Assembly: GCA_024704765.1 (NCBI GenBank)
Contig: JAKMXF010000365.1
Location: 124,001 to 188,000 of the forward strand
Direction of reading: 5' to 3'
Origin: Oopsacas minuta
Taxonomy: Eukaryota > Animalia > Porifera
DNA length: 64,000 bases
Shown: positions 6,473-51,624 of the stretch, in pieces
How the letters are laid out: every line of letters begins with the position of its first letter
How positions within the stretch are numbered: position 1 is the first letter of the stretch
Notes under the pieces: generated by a model
Database searches by the model: none
Seen by the model: only the letters and a program-made list of their open reading frames with translations
Told to the model about the DNA's origin: nothing
Made by a program: the position numbers and the translations under genes

Positions 6473-9400
6473 TCATTTAACTTTCCCGCCTTTTTTCTTA
6501 ACAGCAGCCTCCTGATTGGTTGAAATCTCCTTAGCAACGTAAGGAATGTATTCTCTAAACTTTGTAGGCATAAATGGCTGCAGAGCTTCTGGGACTTTTA
6601 TGCCCGCCTCTGTTTGATAATTCTCTAAAATGGCACAAATTGTCCTTGTTGTGGCACACATAGTGGCATTCAACATGTGTACATAAGTGGCAGCTTCGTT
6701 CAATTTCTTCTGACCATATCTAGAGGAAACATATTTTGCGTTACCATGGTAACACAATGAATTCAAAAGTGAATCTAATAGATCGAACAATTCACACCTT
6801 TTCTCTGAGATGCATGAATATATCTCTTTGATATTTGAACACCATTCCTTAATTAATCACTTTCGACACATTTGTCAAATTTCAAGTCTCTATCTCTTAC
6901 AATTTGCTCAATAAAGCGTGTGAATTCTCACCTGATTAATAATCTTCTACTCTGCCAATCAGTGCAATTACTGCAAGAGACCAATTCCCTAAATTTCCCG
7001 CTTGAGGGGAACCAAGCTTCCAAATCATATTTCATCGCCGCAGCGTTATTCAGCTCTCCCGACACAATATTTACTACCTAGATACGAGATAAGTTCAATG
7101 GAATTATGATAAACAAGGCAGAAAGGGACAAGGAATATAACAGTGTCAGTTCAGCAGCCATAAAGGACACAAACTGTCAACCGTGAGACACAAATTAGCA
7201 CAGGTTTAATATGATTAATCGCCAAAAGGTGTAATAATTTCATACCCAAAACTAACTGCTAGATGGACACACTTACCCTATAAGGAATTCCTAACAACTT
7301 ATAGAAGCTCTCGGCATTTCCTATCATCTCATGAAACATTGTCCATGATTCATTCGGTGATGTTATACAGAACTGTTCGATTTTATTGAACTGATGGACG
7401 CGGAATATGCCGAGCATGTCTCTGCCATGTGAACCAACTTCCTGTCTGAAACAAGTAGAAATACCCGCGTAACGAATTGGGAGTGATTTAGTTGGTAACC
7501 ATTCGTCACGATGGAATGCAGCGATAGTCTGTTCACTTGTGGCTATTAGATATTTCTCCTCTATTTCCACGTCTTCCTTCACTTCACTACGCTTTCCGAC
7601 TACCTATGGAAAATACATACAATCAACTCCAGCCATATCGAAGTGTGAAAGTGTACAAATATGGCCCCAAACCGTCAAAGTAACATATATAGGATCGGTC
7701 TTTTGAGCTTCTATATAACGAGTATTGAATATGTTACTCTGACGGTTTGGGAGCATATTTGTACAATTTCACACTTTGATATAAGCGGGTATTTCGTATA
7801 TCCGTGTTAGATACAGCTGGAGTTAAAAATTGGGCTATTTTGACCAAAATATTCTTCACATGTGTGTATTTTTAGATATTTAACCATGGATGGTGGATTT
7901 AGTCAAGTATAAATTTCCTGTGTTCTAATGTCAAAGCCTCCCATCTGATTGGCTTAACTTTGGCCGCCAAAAGGTGTGAAAAATATCTACACCCATAAAT
8001 TCAGATTTATCAACCTTATATAATTCTTCATCAAATTGACTCAACTGTGCCACTTGCTGCATTACACCTTTCTTCATAAAAAATGGTGTTGATATAACTT
8101 CAAATCCTTTATCACCTAGTTCTCTAAGTGCTAATTGAATTAGTGCTTGTTCTAGGAACACTCCAGGGCCTTTAAGATAGTAACACCTAGATAATATATA
8201 AGGTGTAGTTACTTAAGGTGTTAAGTTAGGGTTATTGGGGAACTGGCTTGAGTCACAAACTTGAAACTTGTTGATAGTATAGAATATGATACTCATAGGT
8301 AATATTTCAAATATCTAAGAGAAATATCAAAAACTCTCTCTGAGATGGGTAACAAAGTTCTCCTAGTGTCTGGAAGAAGGACCAGCCCTGTGTGATCCAC
8401 TGAATATGTTAAAATTGACATAAAGGTGTCAACGGGTGATGAAATGTTACCTTGAGCCTGAGACTAGACTTCCTCTATGTAAATCAACAGCATCAATCAT
8501 TTCGATAAGGTCTACGTGTGAATGTTTATATCTGACAGAGCAATCGCCAAATGTTCTCTCTATCTTATTATTTTCCTCATCATCTGATATTATTACGTCA
8601 GGATGTAAGAGATTTCCTAGTTCAGAGAAGAGGACTTCTCTTTCCCTTTCCGTTTCCTGTAATATTGCAGACAGTAGAACGAGGGAAGTATTAATTTAGT
8701 GGGACAGCCGGGACATAGCATATTTAAATTAAACTGGAATGTAAGGTTTCCTCCAGTTTTGGCGGGATATTAGCCTCAATACTTATCAGGAAGGGCGCCA
8801 AAACCGGAATAGTTGGCAAGTATAAGAATTTTGCCCGCCAAAACGCGCCAAATTTGTTTTGTCTGGTTTTTGGTAGGTGAGATTAGGCGGGAAATAATAC
8901 AAACCATAAGTTTTTCATTATTGCTTTTCATTTCCAATTCAACCTTTGCAACTAATTTCTTCAAAACAGTTACATTTAGAACTGAAACTAATTCTTTGTT
9001 TAGTTCCGATAACTTCAGAATAATATCCTCAGGAATTTGATCCCCTTCCTCTCCCATTGGTCCTTTGGTCTTCATTAAGTCTCCAATCTATATTAAACGA
9101 ATATAATTATATTATTGCACCATGGATAATTTAAATTTCTCAAAGTATTCATGGTTGAGGCAAATACTTATTACCTCAAATAGTAACTAGGGTGGAAATG
9201 AATTTCTAACACCTTTGGACAGGGGACATAACATATAATCACATACTACATAGCATGAATCATAGCATTCTATACATGAATATGTTCACCAACTCCCTAA
9301 CGTGCTTCTGTGACGTGCTATGTCCCAGTTTCCATGGTTACCGCGTTGGTATTAGCTACACCCTTCAGCGAGGAGAAGGGCGGGCGGGTATTACCTGTGT

Positions 9401-13605: not shown

Positions 13606-14904
13606 TCATTGAATATTGTTAGACTTAAAATTATGTCCGCTACAGATTAATAACAAATTCCTGCATTTTTGTTTACAACACTTTTTACAACATTTGTGGT
13701 CACATTTCGCGGACAATGGATTGCAACCACATTCACTACAAAATGAGTATAATTCCAATCTTGATTTCTTGCAGTTTGAATTTGAGTTTTCCTGGAAATG
13801 TTTGCGATCTTTCTTAGATGAAAGTCCATCTGATTTCTTGTAAACTAATTCGCACACATTTTCTGTAGATACGACACTTTTTTGTGGTTCATTTTTGGTG
13901 GCATGGTGTAGATAAGGTCGACACACAAACTTGGAACCAAAGTTGTCCATCTCAACGCCGATATTTCCAACAATATCCATCAAACACTTAAAATCACTCG
14001 CAGTCCCGATTTGTTGTCTGAATTTCTCGAATCGATAGTTTTGTAATACATCGTGGAATATTTTAAAGAGGTGACCACGAATCGCGCTGGTATGTACTGG
14101 ATACTGGACCACCATTTCTAAATACCCCCGGGCCACTTCGTACACACAAGGGGTCGTGTCTGTGAAAAGCGCAGGATTATATAACAAGCCCTCTGCGGAC
14201 ATAACACCATCAGATTTTGTCAACAACAAACAATTCTTGACGTCATCAAGGCACAATATATTACCATTAGCGAAAACTGGAATAGAAACTGCTTGCTTGA
14301 CAGCTAAGATATGTTCCCAACTAGCTGAACCCGTCAGGACCCCCTTTTGGTCCCTTGTCCTCCCATGAACAGTCAAAATACTAACACCTTTGCTCTGTAA
14401 AAATAGTGCGTATTCAATAGTTCGTGTTATCTCAGGGAAAATTCTAATTTTACAGGTGACTGGTATTTTTAGGTTGTCATGTAAGATTGAAATAAGTTCG
14501 CCTATTAATTCCCAATTGTCCTGGAGGAAAGCGCCGTAATTACCCTTCTTAGCGATGGACTGTGGACACCCGAGATTGATATCAACACCATCACATCGGT
14601 CCTCAACCAGACGTGCAGCCTCCAATAAAATTACAGGATCATTAGCACAAAATTGAACAATTAGTGGTCTGTCTTTGGGAACTGTTGTGAAATTTTTAGC
14701 GCGGTAATTCTTATCTTTTAAGAACATTCCTGAGTGTAACATGGGAGTGAAGCAAAGTTGTGCGCCAAAATTACGACATAGCATACGAAAAGGAAGTTCA
14801 GATTGATCAACCATTGGCGCTAGTATGAATTTTGGTGAATTTAGTGTTTTTTGGTAGAATTCGTAAGCTGAGTTTATTATTGTTGTTGTTTGTTTGCTTG
14901 CCAT
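13606..14904 (-). CDS. DUS1L: tRNA-dihydrouridine(16/17) synthase-like, single exon
   Basis: FILAPMVDQSELPFRMLCR, PLIVQFCAND, GVDINLGCPQSIAKKGNYGAFL, TVHGRT and a Cys-rich C-terminus. First ATG is at 14904. Confidence 0.95.
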   Translation of the reverse strand: MASKQTTTIINSAYEFYQKTLNSPKFILAPMVDQSELPFRMLCRNFGAQLCFTPMLHSGMFLKDKNYRAKNFTTVPKDRPLIVQFCANDPVILLEAARLVEDRCDGVDINLGCPQSIAKKGNYGAFLQDNWELIGELISILHDNLKIPVTCKIRIFPEITRTIEYALFLQSKGVSILTVHGRTRDQKGVLTGSASWEHILAVKQAVSIPVFANGNILCLDDVKNCLLLTKSDGVMSAEGLLYNPALFTDTTPCVYEVARGYLEMVVQYPVHTSAIRGHLFKIFHDVLQNYRFEKFRQQIGTASDFKCLMDIVGNIGVEMDNFGSKFVCRPYLHHATKNEPQKSVVSTENVCELVYKKSDGLSSKKDRKHFQENSNSNCKKSRLELYSFCSECGCNPLSAKCDHKCCKKCCKQKCRNLLLICSGHNFKSNNIQ

Positions 14905-14937
14905 AATTTCTATAATTAGTAACAAATAAACAAATTA

Positions 14938-45416: not shown

Positions 45417-48400
45417 TTACTGTAAATTCTCAGACGTGATAGAATTTATTTCTTGTGATTTTTTGGTTCGGACGAGAGCCCCGTAATCTTCTGCAGGTGA
45501 AATTGGAAGTGAAGATAGAGATAGTTGCAGATTATCACACCTTTTGTTAGTGCCATTTTTAGTTTCCAAGGTGTTACAAGTTAGACTAGGATTAGTTATA
45601 TGTTTGAATTCTATCTCCAAATCATCTCCAGTTAGTCTCTGCTTATGCTAAAAGAAGACAATTCGATTGTAGGAGTTCCCAACCTTTGCACCTGTGGACA
45701 CCCCTCCAAAGTACTGCGATACAAATTTTCAGCTCATGTGGACCCATTAGTGTCGTCCGTGGACTATCAAATGATATATGGACCACAGGTTGGGAACTGT
45801 TGTTGTTTTATCCCTCACCACCCTGTCCGCACTGAATATACACTTTGCCCCAGGTGTATGGATATGGATTCATACACTATACTTGTGGATTTGACACCAC
45901 TTAACACGGGACAGGGGTGAGGTTATTGAGAAGTGACAATCCCTATCTTCACGCCTAACTGGAGGAGAGGGGAAGACACAAAAAGACAGGATTACCTTTC
46001 TATCCGTACAAGGAAGTAAAGTATTTTCTCCTTTCCTCTTTTCCTCAGGTTTTGGCGATCTTTTGAAAGCATTTGGCAGTGAATTTAGTGAACTAAATCT
46101 CTTATGAATCTTACCAATAGCACTCGGAGCTATTGGTTCTTCTAATGTTCTAATTTTCTTTATTTTAACGCCTTTATCTTTGGATTTTCCTTTCAGACCT
46201 AACCCTGATGCCAAACTTGAAATCGCATTCTTTCCAGAGGTGTCTGAGTTGACGTTTACTTGTTTATGTTTGTGCTTAGATATTGTCTTTAGTGTTGGAG
46301 TTTCTACAAAACACATTTGAATATTGGTATATGGATGGGACCTCAAGGAGTCGAAATTACCTGTCGTAGAAATATTAACCGGACTGGCGTATAATTCAGG
46401 TGAACTATCTGATCTGAGTCTATTAATTTGATCATTATTAGTTGTAGGGGATTCCTGGAGAGGTGACAACCTATCTGTTACAGGTTCTTTGTTTGTTGCA
46501 GAGCTATTCGACCTACATGCATACTATCATTTCCCGTTATATCTTAGCTCAAGGGACCGTGATAATTACTTGGATATGACCATGGAATATATGTTACTTT
46601 GAGGGTTTGGGACCATATTTGTATAATATCACACTTCGATATAACTGGAGTTGAGTGAATTTATATAAAAAATTGTACGATTTTTTGCATTATTTGGCAG
46701 AATTTATAGAAAAACTGGCAAGGGCTACTAAGATGAAATTCGGTATGTGGGTGTAAGGTGATATATCTAAGGAGATGTCCTAATATTAAACTAATATCTC
46801 TACAATTTTCTGAGTTAGGTGACAAAATATCTTGACCTATCAGATTCGAGAGTGCACTAACTATCGCTCGAGGCAAGCACATGGGCCTTCGAAGGTTCCG
46901 GAAAGGTGAGATGGTGTGAAAGATATGCTATATGTGTCTGGATGTCTCTTATTGCTATTTAACACACAACTATTCCAAACCTTGTTGCTGTGTTCGCCTT
47001 TGATTTGTTCTTAATTATCAGTTTAGAAGGTAGAGTGTCAGATGGTTTCTGTTCCAGTACGGATTTCTTGAAGATTTGTACACTACGTGGCAACGAATTG
47101 TGGTCAAAGGATAGTGAAGATGCAATAGGACTCGCGTTACAATCATTTGCCTACAAGAAAGTACAGATTTTCAAAAGTTATATAATAAAAAGTGTTTTTT
47201 GCAGAAAAGGTTGCGTCAATTTTTCAGGCATTTGAACTGGGTGCGTACCGTGATAATTTTTGGGGTGTTAGGTCGGCTTCCCTTCTCAGAGGGAGGCTGG
47301 GGGAGGAATCTGGAACTATTTGGGGTCTTTTGATTGGACAGGTCACTGGAAATGGAGATTGATTGGACAGGAGGAGGCTCTGCCTGACTGGGAGTAGTTG
47401 GGACGGAACTTTCTGGAGTTCTGTCCCTAGGGGGTCGAGTTGGAAACTGTTCCATCAACTGTCTACAAATAAATTCATAATATAATTGGAATACCCTCGA
47501 ATCTGATAGGCCATGACGTTTTGACACCTATTTCAGAGAGTTTATTATTATTATTATTACCTTGATGTTCTCAAGGCTGTGTCTTTGGCAAGTTTGGCTC
47601 TCGTTAATTGTAGTGATAGATCCCTAAACAAATATGTATATAAACAACAACAACAACAACATAACAACAACAAACTCACTTTGCCAGATCAACAGCATCA
47701 TTTCTCTCATTTTCAAACTCAATTAATGTAATCTGTAATTCTCTAAAAATTGAATCAAAATCACCCCAGCTGGAATATTGTGAAGTATTTGACAATTCAT
47801 AACCTCACCCCAGAGGGGATGTTCAAAGTTCAAATCCACAAGTAAGGTGCATTGATCCTCTCCTCACATGTATAGGACCAATTTTTACATATTCCAACAC
47901 TTAGTTCATCAAGTTAGTAACTTACCTTATTTTTATTTTAAGTTTGTTGACGTGAGAATTTTTCTCAGAAATTATTAATAAACTTTCTTCCAACTGTAAT
48001 CCATCCTAATAAATAATAACAAATTTGAAGAGCTATAAATGTAAATAATAACAATTACCTGTGTTGCTTGAACTAGATTTGTGTGTTTAGATTCAATTGC
48101 ATTAATCTTCAAGCTTAACTCCTGAAGGAAATCACATTTAATACGAGCATACATGGTCTACTTATGATAGAGACTGTTTGCTGTATATTCATGAAAACAA
48201 CAATAAATTTTCATATGAGAAACTTGAAAATGGGAAATTCGGATTCAGCGTACTTTGTTGCACCTTGTAGCTGTTAAAAGTAACTCTCCACCAATAAATA
48301 ATTACACATTTTCGCTAATTTGTTTATTTACATACATAGAAACAATACTAACTCTAAGTTCCTGTTGTTGTTGAAAAATTGTTTGTTGGTAACTTGGCAA

Positions 48401-50816
48401 TAGCTGCAATGCTTGATCCCCATTCATTCTTATTCCAATACGCTGTGCGCCAATTTTGGAAGCTTCACCCAATTCAACATCTCTGCTATATTCACACTAA
48501 ATATGATAAATGCAAATAAATAGAAGAAATAAACAATTTCTTAATTGGTAAACCCTCAAACCTGATAAGTCAATACATTTTGACACCTATCTCAGAGAGT
48601 TTACGAGATATCGCTTAGATAATAGAAGTTCATCCTAGAATAATCACATTCCATATACCTGCCAAATTTCACGTTTGTAACTCCTACCAATTCATCCATG
48701 GTTATTTCACGTATTTGAACTATGCATACAAATTCCTAAAATACCTTAGTTACCAATAATACCTTAGGAATGTAAGGGTATATCAGTGATTTGGCTTTTG
48801 GAAGCGAATCCTCATCAGTAAAACTCTGAGAATCAGAAGAATCAGGAATTACTCTACCCTGGTTACCAGATGTAGCCTTAGGAATGTCATTCATACTCTT
48901 AGAAATTCTATCATCAGGCAGGATTGCATTGAGTATCGCCTTGTCCTCTGGGGTCACAGGAAGTTTGTTCCCCTTCATTCTGTGGCTCAACAATGCACTA
49001 CGTACCTAGATAAAGCAACAAATAATGTGTTGCAAGTGTGAAAGTGGCAGAGTGGCATAAAGGAGGGTTGCAAAGATCACTGATAGTTACTTTCCCCGGA
49101 ATCGAACCAGGTAATTACAATTTCCAGTCGTACGTTTTCCCATTAAACTAAAAAGCGAAGTAGTGATCTTCATGGCCTCCTTAAACAACCATAATTTCAA
49201 ACTATATTTATACAGAAATGTGAAATGTAATCAATTGATGTGGTTGCATAATAAAAGCTAGAACTATTTTCTGTAACCTCGCAAAAAGTTTGCAAATTTG
49301 AATGTGGATGGCGTCATTGACACTGAACCAGGGGGGCAGGGGGCTCGTGGAGCATGGAAGCTGTCCAATATCCATGTATAGTTCGTAACAATTTGTAAAT
49401 GGAGCAAAAAGGAGGGTAGCAAGGATCTCTAGGGGGGTTTCTTTTTAAGGGGTCACCCATGTGTTTCAAATTAAACTAAAAAGCGAAGTAGTGATCTTCA
49501 TAGCCTCCTTATACAACCATAATTTCAAACTATATTTATACAGAAATGTGAAATGTAATCAATTGATGTGGTTGCATAATAAAAGCTAGAACTATTTTCT
49601 GTAACCTCGCAAAAAGTTTGCAAATTTGAATGTGGATGGTGTCATAGACGCTGAACCAGGGGGGCAGGGGGCTCGTGGAGCATGGAAGCTGTCGCAATAT
49701 CCATGTATAGTTCGTAACAATTTGTAAATGGAGGAAAAAGGAGGGTAGCAAAGATCACTGGGGTTTCTTTTCCAGGGATCGAACCAGGTAATTACAATCT
49801 TCAGTTGTATGTTTTTCCAATTAAACTAAAAAGACGAAGTAGTGATCTTCATAGCCTCCTTAAACTGGAATAATTTCCAACTATATTTATACAGCAAGAT
49901 GAATGATAAATAATCGATGTGGTTGGATAAAAATAGCTTTCATTCGTTGTAAATATTAATGGAATGCCACTAAATAGTCTTGTTCCAAATCCTGAAAAGT
50001 GAGCTGGAAATAGTGTGTTAACACCTTCAAAATTCAGGAAATGGAACCAGACTAAAAAGTTCTAAAAGGTGCCAAAATGGAGGGTGGCGCCGATCGTAAC
50101 AGACCTTTCCGGGAGTCGAACCCGGTTCTTATAATCCTAAGTTATATGTTCTCACCAATAAACCAAAAAGCAGAAGTAGCGATCAGCAAAGCCTCCATAC
50201 AAATACACTAATTTTCAAATCAGTTATACTACAAGTTAATTCAGAATATATGATGTGGTTGTATAATATATCAATGCAGATCCTCGGATATGATTGAATG
50301 AGGGCTTATTGGCCATATCTCGAAGAGGTGTGGAAATAATTTTTACATATTTTTGTACAAAAATAAAATTATAATTGGAAATAGAATTGAACTTACCTTT
50401 TCTTTTTTGAGTCGAAGTTGAAGTCTACTGTTCTGATTATTGGCAAACTTCAATTTTCGTTTGAGTTCTCCTTTCATTGCTTTTTCTTGCATCACCGAAG
50501 CTTCTAAGTTATTCAATCGGGCAATTACATCTGATTCTACTTCATTACGTCTTGATATACCCGTATTCTCAGTTTGCAGTGCCAAAACACTATCTTCTAA
50601 CTTTCTTATCCGTTCAAGAGCCATTCCAAGATTACTTGTTTGAAATGGTGGAACTTCAGTGATTATATCTGTGACACTTCTTACACCTGGATATGAGGAT
50701 GTGCCTATATTCTGGTCAACTGGCACATTATTATGTCTAAACTGGTTCAAACTAATATATGGATCCATTTGATAATATTTCAAAAATCTCGTTCTTATAA
50801 TATTGTAAATTGCCAT
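45417..50816 (-). CDS. Multi-exon coiled-coil/low-complexity protein of unknown function (host of the RNA array)
   Basis: Exon 1 50816-50397 (GTAAGT donor) splices in frame to an exon starting 49005 (VRSALLSHRMKG...). Further exon-like segments at ~48500-48350, ~48130-48060, ~47460-47240, ~46500-45900 and ~45620-45417. The internal structure is only partly resolved. Confidence 0.65.
45670..45802. mobile_element. hAT-like MITE (GTTCCCAACCT-type termini)
   Basis: Inverted AGTTCCCAACCT / AGGTTGGGAACT. Partial relatives at ~5575-5620, ~24195-24280 and ~38257-38330. Confidence 0.65.
46530..46656. mobile_element. MITE family A copy
   Basis: Family core, ending ATAACTGGAGTTGA. Confidence 0.7.
48545..48690. 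repeat. Dispersed repeat family B copy
   Basis: CCCTCAAACCTGATAAGTCAATACATTTTGACACCTATCTCAGAGAG...GCCAAATTTCACGTTTGTAACTC. Confidence 0.7.
49062..49180 (-). ncRNA. Stem-enclosed tRNA-like RNA, copy 1 (anticodon GGA)
   Basis: Minus strand: GGAGGCCATGAAGATCACTACTT, cloverleaf 49157-49087, then CTATCAGTGATCTTTGCAACCCTCC-TTT. D stem GTTT/AAAC, anticodon arm TACGA CT GGA AA TTGTA, T arm CCTGG TTCGATT CCGGG. Confidence 0.8.
49205..49251 (-). promoter_or_regulatory. U6-type (type 3 Pol III-like) promoter of copy 1: PSE-like element at -71..-56 and TATAAATA at -32..-25
   Basis: TTATGCAACCACATCA-like motif and TATA occur at the same offsets upstream of all four copies. Confidence 0.65.
49411..49508 (-). 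ncRNA. Copy 2, internally deleted (D arm and acceptor-like stem kept; anticodon and T arms absent)
   Basis: Same leader and trailer, followed by TTTTT. Inner sequence GCTTTTTAGTTTAATTTGAAACACATGGGTGACCCCTTAAAAAGA. TATA at 49540-49533. Confidence 0.7.
49740..49859 (-). ncRNA. Stem-enclosed tRNA-like RNA, copy 3 (anticodon GAA, Phe-like)
   Basis: Anticodon arm TACAA CT GAA GA TTGTA (anticodon 49802-49800), T loop TTCGATC, trailer AGTGATCTTTGCTACCCTCC followed by TTTTT. TATA at 49891-49884. Confidence 0.85.
50079..50196 (-). ncRNA. Stem-enclosed tRNA-like RNA, copy 4 (anticodon TAG, Leu-like, short variable loop)
   Basis: Anticodon arm TATAA CT TAG GA TTATA (50139-50137), perfect T arm CCGGG TTCGACT CCCGG, leader GCTGATCG pairing with trailer CGATCGGC, then ATTTT. 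Confidence 0.85.
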
Positions 50817-51624
50817 ATATGGAAATTTTGGTTGGATTCTTTGTTTGGGAATTATGGATCATAATAGCTAGCTATGTATTGTGAGATTTTCAAATACTTA
50901 TTCGTGAATTACGAGCACTATTTCGCTTCTAGCAAGTGTCTACAGTAATATATTAGGATTTTCACACCTTTTGGCAACAGTCTACTCGGCTTAATAAGGT
51001 CACCGATTAACGAGAGTAATTTAACAATATTTGTATGGTTCAGTTTCTGTCCAAGATGGAGTATTAACAATCTCCGAATTAATGAGATTCTCATCAATCG
51101 AATGCGCTTATAATTCTAAATTCAGGAGCTTATATATATATATATCACTTCAAAGTTCAATTAGAATACATATTCAGCCTAGAATCCAAACAAATCGACA
51201 AACTTGTATAAATCTAGTTGGAAATGAGATAATTGACGGATATTTATTATTACTGATACGCTATTCATGCTTAACTGTCCGTATAATATTCTTACAAATC
51301 TCAGTCTCAGATAGGTGTGCAAATATACATAATCTCGGGCAAAGTATATTCATACATATGGGCAAGTTTCTAAAGATTCATATTCGGGAAAATTGTAATT
51401 CCATGGCAACCAGATTGAAGAAACAGCCGTGATGGAATGCTGTATTTTAGCGGGGAAAATGAGTTGTAGAGTTACTCAATTTAGCGGTCTTTTAACACCT
51501 CTTAGGACAAGTTGTTACCCATTTTGTAATGTGCTTATAAAATAATCAGATGATAAACTAATTGAGTGAAGATGGTTCATAAATACAAACAAGTAAACAA
51601 ATGAGTAAGCATATTAATCTGTTG

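Follow-up and report, generated by a model that had tools for sequence, protein, structure and literature searches.

What kind of gene is present in four copies within a single intron of the glass sponge Oopsacas minuta, and does its product work as a transfer RNA (tRNA)? The question arises from a 64,000-nucleotide (nt) stretch of contig JAKMXF010000365.1 (GenBank assembly GCA_024704765.1, positions 124,001 to 188,000, forward strand), referred to below as the window, in which a 1391-nt intron of an uncharacterised coiled-coil gene on the minus strand (49006-50396) contains an entire array of four short units, A to D. Comparison of these units with one another and with those of other assemblies indicates that they are an independently transcribed family of small-RNA genes conserved among glass sponges, named here framed tRNAs. 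They may be unusual, externally promoted tRNA genes in which a conserved helix of leader and trailer serves as a handling element, a reading that is favoured tentatively and placed just short of an even chance.

The GGAGG starts of the units lie at 50196 (A), 49859 (B), 49508 (C) and 49180 (D), all on the minus strand, at spacings of 337 (A-B), 351 (B-C) and 328 (C-D). At the other end CCTCC is followed directly by A and T4 in unit A, by T5 in units B and C, and by T3 in unit D. The initial annotation of this DNA had described four same-strand units at these spacings within the intron, which was borne out by the reading of both strands and by RNA-seq, and the GGAGGC starts, CCCTCC ends and T-runs (T3, T5, T5 and AT4) that it listed are all present as claimed. 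An RNA-seq contig (run X4) is spliced at 49002-50394, a cut that can be shifted by +3 to give GT..AG on the minus strand, and the X4 depth is 1000-2800 in the exons flanking the array intron versus 21-53 inside it. Other introns nearby in the host gene are much shorter (183-266 nt). No Pfam match was found for the 140-aa segment encoded by the host exon upstream of the array intron.

Homologues of the host exon were found in public assemblies (n=8, 51-72% identity). Seven contigs from six other assemblies, likely other glass sponges, were fetched (labels L071-L080), and together with the window they provide 17 units. All seven carry the same unit type just downstream of the orthologous exon, so that the leader/trailer pair, which the initial annotation had proposed to seek in related species, was found in the orthologous intron of each of them. 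The orientation of the units relative to the host gene flips among assemblies, indicating that they are transcribed independently of it. Intact units score 99-140 bits with R1, a covariance model built for the whole RNA, which in the 64-kb window matches only the four units. In a close relative about 10% diverged (run X5), a contig of low coverage includes unit A and has the anticodon GUG instead of UAG, through the changes A>C at 50139 and T>A at 50138 (plus strand). The remaining changes in this contig fit the structure: G-U becomes G-C (50103), G-C becomes G-U (50089), C-G replaces a mismatch beside the inner helix (50097), and T-loop position 57 still has a purine. Seventy metagenome loci that matched an exact leader/acceptor-junction pattern were rejected as chance, the best R1 score among them, 22.9 bits, belonging to a piece of an ordinary tRNA.

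The transcribed region is 120-127 nt long, begins with GGAGGC and ends with CCUCC followed by the T-run. Its ends form a helix of two parts, 5 bp and, after a conserved internal loop, about 10 bp, which encloses a complete but A/U-rich and weak cloverleaf. The end pairing proposed initially, GGAGG/CCTCC plus AAGATCACT/AGTGATCTT in units B and D with a compensated version in A, is present throughout, and the cloverleaf proposed inside three copies is detected by ARAGORN and by the Rfam tRNA model in units A, B and D. Ordinary tRNA genes have a seven-pair acceptor stem with a free, short leader and trailer; here leader and trailer pair with each other over about 15 bp, with covariation. For an alignment of 14 units taken from several assemblies, RNAalifold predicts both helices of the frame, terminal and inner, and three of the cloverleaf stems (acceptor, anticodon and T); with the D stem included there are 34 pairs. 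Standard pairs occupy 95.4% of the 474 cells, and both partners have changed in 16 of the 34 pairs (49 cells). Not one of 500 shuffles matched the observed paired percentage, the count of compensated pairs, the count of compensated cells or the covariation score, while a measure of further pair types was equalled by 29 of 500; with the partners slid by 1-3 columns as a control, pairing was only 41-55%. Compensatory stem changes of the kind noticed in the initial annotation are more than chance.

The inner helix of the frame is the most compensated part, 8 of its 10 pairs having changed on both sides (GAUCAC/GUGAUC, CAGUUUGC/GCAAACUG and GAAUCAU/AUGAUUC are among its variants), and in one unit the terminal helix is GGAAG/CUUCC. 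Invariant or nearly so are the 5' GGAGGC and an unpaired leader, CUACUUC, just 5' of the cloverleaf; within the cloverleaf U8, A14, the D-loop GG (G18G19), U33, A58 and the T arm GGUUC.A..CC with its UUC(G/A)A loop; and on the 3' strand GC and (C/U)CUCC. Sequence conservation is strongest in the frame and leader rather than in the tRNA stems, and most of the stability of the full RNA comes from the frame. Beside the acceptor stem there are unpaired linkers of variable sequence, about 6 nt on the 5' side and 0-10 nt on the 3' side. A kink-turn was considered for the conserved internal loop and rejected, the GA of the bulged strand not being conserved and the other strand having no GA. Unit C, which keeps the frame, folds no better than shuffled sequence (z = +0.76) and is probably a dead copy. 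Units C and D have nearly the same promoter, and between B and D the RNA differs by about 12%, a sign of mosaic history within the array.

Upstream of the RNA, each of the 17 units has a TATAAAT-like box at -34 to -27 and a box resembling a proximal sequence element (PSE) at -66 to -56, both anchored at GGAGG. The PSE-like box reads CAACCACATC in the window and in L071, L074, L075 and L078, CCACCCATAA and AACAACCCATAA in L076, TGACCCATGAG in L073 and CGCCCACAAG in L072; the window has exact copies of the PSE motif at the four units and nowhere else. A PSE near -60 combined with a TATA box near -30 is the geometry of type-3 promoters of RNA polymerase III (Pol III); PSE, TATA box and T-run are found at fixed spacing in all 17 units. 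The sponge DNA covered, 200 kb in all, contains no U6 gene. The RNA also contains box-A-like TAGTTTAATGG and box-B GGTTCGATTCC sequences, and by sequence and conservation the units combine A and B boxes with an upstream TATA/PSE, a terminal stem and a T-run, as in the hybrid promoters of vault genes. When the first-position orthologues from four assemblies are compared, alignment is possible only over the block TTATACAACCACATC, the TATA box and the RNA; the PSE/TATA block of unit A is 100% conserved in the four assemblies between unalignable flanks. The initial view of the units as independent genes of small nuclear RNA (snRNA) type holds up, with PSE-like box, TATA box and T-run at fixed distances in all assemblies and in either host orientation. 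Judged from this promoter anatomy, transcription by Pol III from a type-3 or hybrid promoter is likely. A second PSE-plus-TATA copy (CAACCACATC, 18-26 nt, TATAA) is located at 6847-6885 in L071 and 6848-6886 in L074 and is not followed by a framed RNA; this copy is either the relic of a lost unit or a promoter for something else.

The copy number of the units is low. Counting matches of 85% likeness or more, the DNA runs of the same organism cover the units 55-211 times, 1-2x the single-copy level of about 100, which excludes a short interspersed nuclear element (SINE) or satellite with hundreds of similar copies. The initial annotation had named hundreds of decayed copies without stem covariation as a finding that would speak against it; this depth and the strong covariation contradict such an origin.

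The inner part of the RNA is placed as a tRNA by the Rfam model (RF00005, threshold 29), which gives 33-59 bits in 15 of the 17 units. The units listed above the threshold are A, B and D of the window (scores and ARAGORN anticodons in Table 1), L071, L072, L073a-e, L075, L076a/b and L078; window C, L074 and L073f are below it. Several features of the anticodon loop follow tRNA rules. Of the 15 canonical units 10 have G and 5 have U as the wobble base, none having A or C although the genome is A/T-rich; the chance of this is about 0.001-0.004 assuming 8-10 independent lineages. All 15 have U at position 33, and 14 of them have a purine at position 37. Which purine stands at position 37 depends on the anticodon: A37 occurs in three units (GGA, GAC and one UUG) and G37 in every GAA, GUA, UAG, UGG and GUG unit, a split found in 4 of 455 arrangements by hypergeometric count. 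Between unit B (CUGAAGA) and unit D (CUGGAAA) positions 35 and 37 have changed together, and CUGAAGA is the common loop of GAA units from three assemblies even though their bodies are only 66-74% alike. We take the loops CUGAAGA, CUGUAGA, CUUUGAA, UUUGGGU and CUGGAAA to resemble isoacceptor-specific loops of eukaryotic cytosolic tRNAs, a likeness offered as a lead. The restriction of the wobble base, the coupling of position 37 and the tRNA-like loops indicate that the anticodon loop is not simply a free loop, and such constraints lean towards a working tRNA module.

The units cluster by assembly and not by anticodon. L073d (GAA) and L073e (GUA), for example, are 98% alike outside the anticodon loop, as compared with the much lower likeness of GAA units from different assemblies. 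Among L073b-e, the RNA bodies differ by 2-6% and the upstream spacers by 15-25%, which means that the RNA is under purifying selection or is being homogenised; the four anticodons are all different. Accelerated evolution of the anticodon was considered and is unproven: L073b-e require at least 3 changes, where the spacer rate predicts about 1.2 (p ~0.12). The triplet is either free of constraint or switching, without a demonstrable excess over the neutral rate. The sixth L073 unit, L073f (6864-6988, minus strand), has a promoter that is 4.5% different from that of L073e and an RNA that is 27% different, pointing to a mosaic history.

The polymerase, the processing and the charging that would make the framed RNA a source of tRNA we infer as follows. 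Pol III would transcribe the unit from its type-3 or hybrid promoter, and the terminal helix, closing just 5' of the T-run, could let the polymerase tell the true terminator from a T-run located inside the gene. RNase P and RNase Z would then cut in the unpaired linkers beside the acceptor stem, which would give the processing enzymes access, and free a tRNA of about 72 nt. The released cloverleaf would be the working part and behave as a tRNA, whether in the cytosol or in mitochondria, so that its anticodon matters, while the CUACUUC leader and the terminal helix might be a handle to stabilise, process or route the precursor.

Several observations weigh against this explanation. One concerns termination: in 16 of the 17 units the 5' strand of the acceptor stem includes a run of T4-T6 (+25 to +34) that is equal in length to the final T-run, whereas genes of the U6 type have no terminator-length T-run inside. 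In unit B it occupies 49828-49832 of the window. Such a run should stop Pol III early. It may be that Pol III of these animals needs more than T5, or that the long helix closing right before the final T-run aids termination; hairpin-assisted termination by Pol III is itself debated. Many transcripts may instead stop at about 30 nt and yield a short leader RNA, or the polymerase may be other than Pol III. As regards the cloverleaf, pair 1:72 and often also 2:71 are mismatched, leaving 5-6 acceptor pairs, and on excision the cloverleaf is worth only -0.5 to -11.6 kcal/mol (37 C), another fold usually having the minimum energy. Leader and trailer are more conserved than would be expected of discarded parts. 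Leu and Ser anticodons are found on a body with a four-base variable loop and no long variable arm, and one body with many anticodons, Leu and Ser included, would leave the cytosolic identity rules unmet. L074 has U37. In L073f the frame and all stems are kept, one C-G pair of the anticodon stem being compensated, although the loops CCUACCU and AUCAAAA are not tRNA-like, which suggests a function that does not need decoding. Finally, no unit transcripts were seen among the X4 contigs, where the units have intron-level depth only and unit D is absent; X4 is a spliced, mRNA-type library kept as contigs and says nothing on a 125-nt Pol III RNA, and runs X1, X2 and X3 behave as DNA.

It is possible, though less probable than release of a tRNA, that the product is a stable RNA of about 125 nt, kept whole in a ribonucleoprotein similar to those of Y and vault RNAs, with the cloverleaf as a tRNA mimic that recruits tRNA-binding factors; the terminal helix, internal loop and CUACUUC might in that case bind Ro60, TEP1/MVP or La, a suggestion of equally modest likelihood. 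Both such a mimic and a carrier or precursor of tRNAs had been put forward in the initial annotation, and the evidence speaks for each in part. The greater conservation of frame and leader than of the tRNA stems would be expected of such an RNA, as would the retention of stems and loss of tRNA-type loops in L073f, and the gene layout matches as well. Vault RNA genes are likewise about 100-130 nt long, with paired ends, A/B-like boxes plus an upstream TATA/PSE, an oligo-U tail and an arrangement in small tandem clusters; the framed RNA differs from them in having a 25-nt leader before box A and a complete D/anticodon/T cloverleaf in place of the vault variable loop. The Rfam Vault model (RF00006) gives weak full-length alignments to unit A (24.5 bits) and L076a (25.4 bits), with E = 0.0015-0.0045 in narrow searches, but these 2 of the 17 units remain below the gathering threshold of 34 and the other units do not match.

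Y RNAs share the terminal stem with an internal loop, and those of animals also have an oligo-U tail and a type-3 promoter. The likeness is closest to bacterial Y RNAs (YrlA and Yrn1), in which a Ro60-binding stem is joined to a tRNA-like domain, and the Yrn1 of D. radiodurans has the same connectivity as the sponge RNA (PMC4201824). The tRNA part of the framed RNA is, however, complete, scores as a tRNA and has varied anticodons under tRNA-type constraints. The Rfam Y_RNA model (RF00019) found no match at E up to 5-10, and the Deinococcus_Y_RNA alignment reaches 19.2 bits against a threshold of 80. The Ro60-binding motif (GNCGAAN0-1G, Chen et al., PMC4201824, or GGUCCGA) is absent from the framed RNAs, the 5' strand of which reads GGAGGCUAUGAAGAUC, GGAGGCUAGAUUGAUC or GGAGGCUAAGCAGAUC, and the equivalent positions vary. 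Y and vault RNAs are reported to be largely unknown outside deuterostomes (PMC2655684) and MVP is reported in sponges (PMC3762200); that no RNA partners of Ro60 or of vaults are known from sponges counts in favour of such an RNA. Against a role as an uncut scaffold are the anticodon loop, since in a free loop one would expect neither a wobble position devoid of A and C nor a link between the anticodon and position 37, and the 3' linker of 0-10 nt, which is odd for a rigid scaffold.

Returning to the framed RNA as a precursor of tRNA, it is unlikely, if conceivable, that the precursor is a carrier for mitochondrial import. In this sub-case the frame would be the import signal, the RNA would escape nuclear processing, and mitochondrial RNase P and RNase Z would free an organelle-type tRNA that supplements or replaces decaying tRNAs encoded in mitochondrial DNA (mtDNA); the nucleus would encode a second, organelle-style set of tRNAs, and the frame would route it to mitochondria, a proposal no more probable than the import itself. 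Engineered stem-loop tags have been used to import tRNA precursors into mammalian mitochondria, and we know of no natural precedent for such a carrier precursor, which counts against it. The pattern of G37 with GAA and GUA is cytosolic and not mitochondrial, and the canonical D and T loops are unlike those of glass-sponge mitochondrial tRNAs. Wobble bases limited to G and U are those of minimal organellar sets, and the weak A/U-rich cloverleaf, an acceptor stem mismatched at its top and a variable loop that stays short even with Leu and Ser anticodons resemble animal mitochondrial tRNAs, those of glass sponges included (PMC2267718). Glass-sponge mtDNAs have reduced and variable tRNA sets: that of Aphrocallistes vastus has 18 tRNA genes, those for D, E and T being missing and trnF being doubtful and inside nad5, and its authors reported acceptor mismatches and inferred tRNA import (PMC2267718). 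Other glass-sponge mtDNAs (I. panicea, S. nux and Oopsacas) have 20-22 tRNAs. That of Oopsacas itself has 22, however, and the anticodons found in the framed units (Phe, Tyr, His, Gln, Pro, Leu, Val and Ser) are mostly still encoded in mtDNA.

A functionless nature of the units, as a tRNA-derived SINE, a satellite or decaying pseudogenes, is very improbable, since, although they are in tandem, with C clearly broken and D having a weak terminator, they are not the many dispersed, decaying copies of a SINE but have a depth of 1-2x where a true repeat 1 kb off reaches about 600x, a syntenic position across assemblies in which the host exon is only 51-72% identical, strong covariation, promoter footprints, and, as a sign of purifying selection, an RNA divergence 4-10 times below that of the spacers. 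The probability that remains is left to functions not yet thought of, with only a very small part of it for no function at all. The high-copy repeat mentioned lies at 48170-48303, in a neighbouring host intron, with a depth of about 61,000 and many back-joints and loose ends; lesser repeats are found at 48572-48705 (about 30x) and 50984-51117 (about 14x). Tandem Repeats Finder gave no report on the array, the units being too diverged and the period too long, and they were aligned directly instead.

Searches among known families did not give a name for the whole RNA. With Rfam at permissive thresholds, over five stretches, no family covered it and only the inner part was placed, as tRNA; matches to snoRNA, Plastid-ycf2, DUF2693 and similar models were rejected as noise, and the mascRNA model gave 19 bits on unit A. 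No description of hairpin-framed tRNA genes was found in a literature search. Thus the initial annotation's suspicion that the architecture is undescribed stands, and its proposal to compare the units with tRNA, Y_RNA and Vault models led to a confident match for the inner part only.

Three further systems resemble the framed units in part. The gene of selenocysteine tRNA (tRNA-Sec) is also driven by an upstream PSE and TATA box of type 3, but its transcript starts at +1 without a leader or a leader-trailer helix, and it is a single specialised tRNA and not a family with many anticodons. Nematode stem-bulge RNAs, homologues of Y RNAs, are small Pol III genes with a PSE-type motif, conserved stem-forming ends and a variable interior, often clustered or intronic; their interior is not a tRNA, and they have Y-type conserved motifs. 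The mascRNA/MEN-beta elements and the tRNA-miRNA-encoded RNAs (TMERs) of gammaherpesviruses contain tRNA-like folds that are cut from a larger transcript by RNase P and/or RNase Z, but have no proper anticodon arm or are uncharged, and they have no covarying frame helix and another promoter type.

The comparative support for the units is very clean, with covariation, footprinted promoters and synteny at 51-72% exon identity, yet no curated RNA family fits. If the cloverleaf is released and charged, framed tRNAs would be a new animal route of tRNA expression, with an external promoter, a structured leader and trailer, and rapid anticodon switching on one body, with implications for tRNA identity and gene recruitment, and possibly for the import of mitochondrial tRNAs where mtDNA loses tRNA genes. 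The import reading, if true, would provide a natural counterpart of the engineered import tags and a snapshot of nuclear genes taking over from mitochondrial tRNA genes. Should the RNA remain uncut, it would be the first candidate partner of Ro60 or of vaults in sponges and an animal RNA laid out like the bacterial tRNA-like Y RNAs, with consequences for the suggestion that Y and vault RNAs arose from tRNAs. Either way, the units offer the first experimentally usable PSE plus TATA promoter for glass sponges, and a concrete question of Pol III termination, in which T-runs of equal length lie inside the gene and at its end.

Table 1. Framed tRNA units, their promoters and the host intron in the window, and the corresponding units in the other assemblies
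Feature	Position	Strand or orientation	Anticodon	Description	Evidence
Host intron, uncharacterised coiled-coil gene	49006..50396	-			Spliced RNA-seq contig X4
Unit A RNA	50074..50196	-	UAG	123 nt including T-run; tRNA module 50101-50172	R1 114 bits, Rfam tRNA 51.3 bits
Unit A promoter	50224..50265	-		PSE-like box 50252-50265, TATAA 50224-50228 (-32 to -28)	Exact PSE motif match
Unit B RNA	49735..49859	-	GAA	125 nt; tRNA module 49764-49835; T5 terminator	R1 139.6 bits, Rfam tRNA 48.0 bits
Unit B promoter	49884..49929	-		PSE-like box 49916-49929, TATAAATA 49884-49891	Motif match, geometry
Unit C RNA	49406..49508	-		Frame intact; anticodon arm and 5' half of T arm deleted	R1 62.5 bits, alignments
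Unit C promoter	49533..49578	-		PSE-like box 49565-49578, TATAAATA 49533-49540	Motif match, geometry
Unit D RNA	49057..49180	-	GGA	About 122 nt; tRNA module 49087-49157; weak T3 terminator	R1 119 bits, Rfam tRNA 46.5 bits
Unit D promoter	49205..49250	-		PSE-like box 49237-49250, TATAAATA 49205-49212	Motif match, geometry
L073		Opposite to host strand	UUG, GUG, UUG, GAA, GUA	Six tandem units, period about 245; five with these anticodons plus one variant	
L076		One on each strand relative to host	GUA, GAA	Two convergent units	
L072		Opposite to host strand	GAC	One unit	
L075		Host strand	GUG	One unit	
L071 / L074		Host strand	UGG	One unit each, plus possible promoter relic	
L078 / L079 / L080		Host strand	UGG	One unit each	

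The remaining genes of the window are ordinary animal genes, encoding myosin I, Dus, PRCC and NHL-repeat proteins. Dus is a dihydrouridine synthase that modifies the D loop of tRNAs; its gene (13606-14925, minus strand) lies 35 kb from the array, and this proximity is probably a coincidence.

Some minor features of the orthologous introns can be added. The unit at 7083-7210 of L076 (minus strand) has a different acceptor stem, GUCAAAU/AUUAGAC, with an encoded ACCA right after it, and is the sole unit without an internal T-run. The same intron of L072 contains a minisatellite of approximately 18-nt AAAGTTAAAGATTTAGAA-like units (7260-7450). GCCAC(T) and TGTGCCAC / TTGTGTCAC recur in several assemblies just past the terminators and near the 5' splice site, as at 49040-49056 of the window, 6644-6680 of L071 and 6741-6765 of L078.

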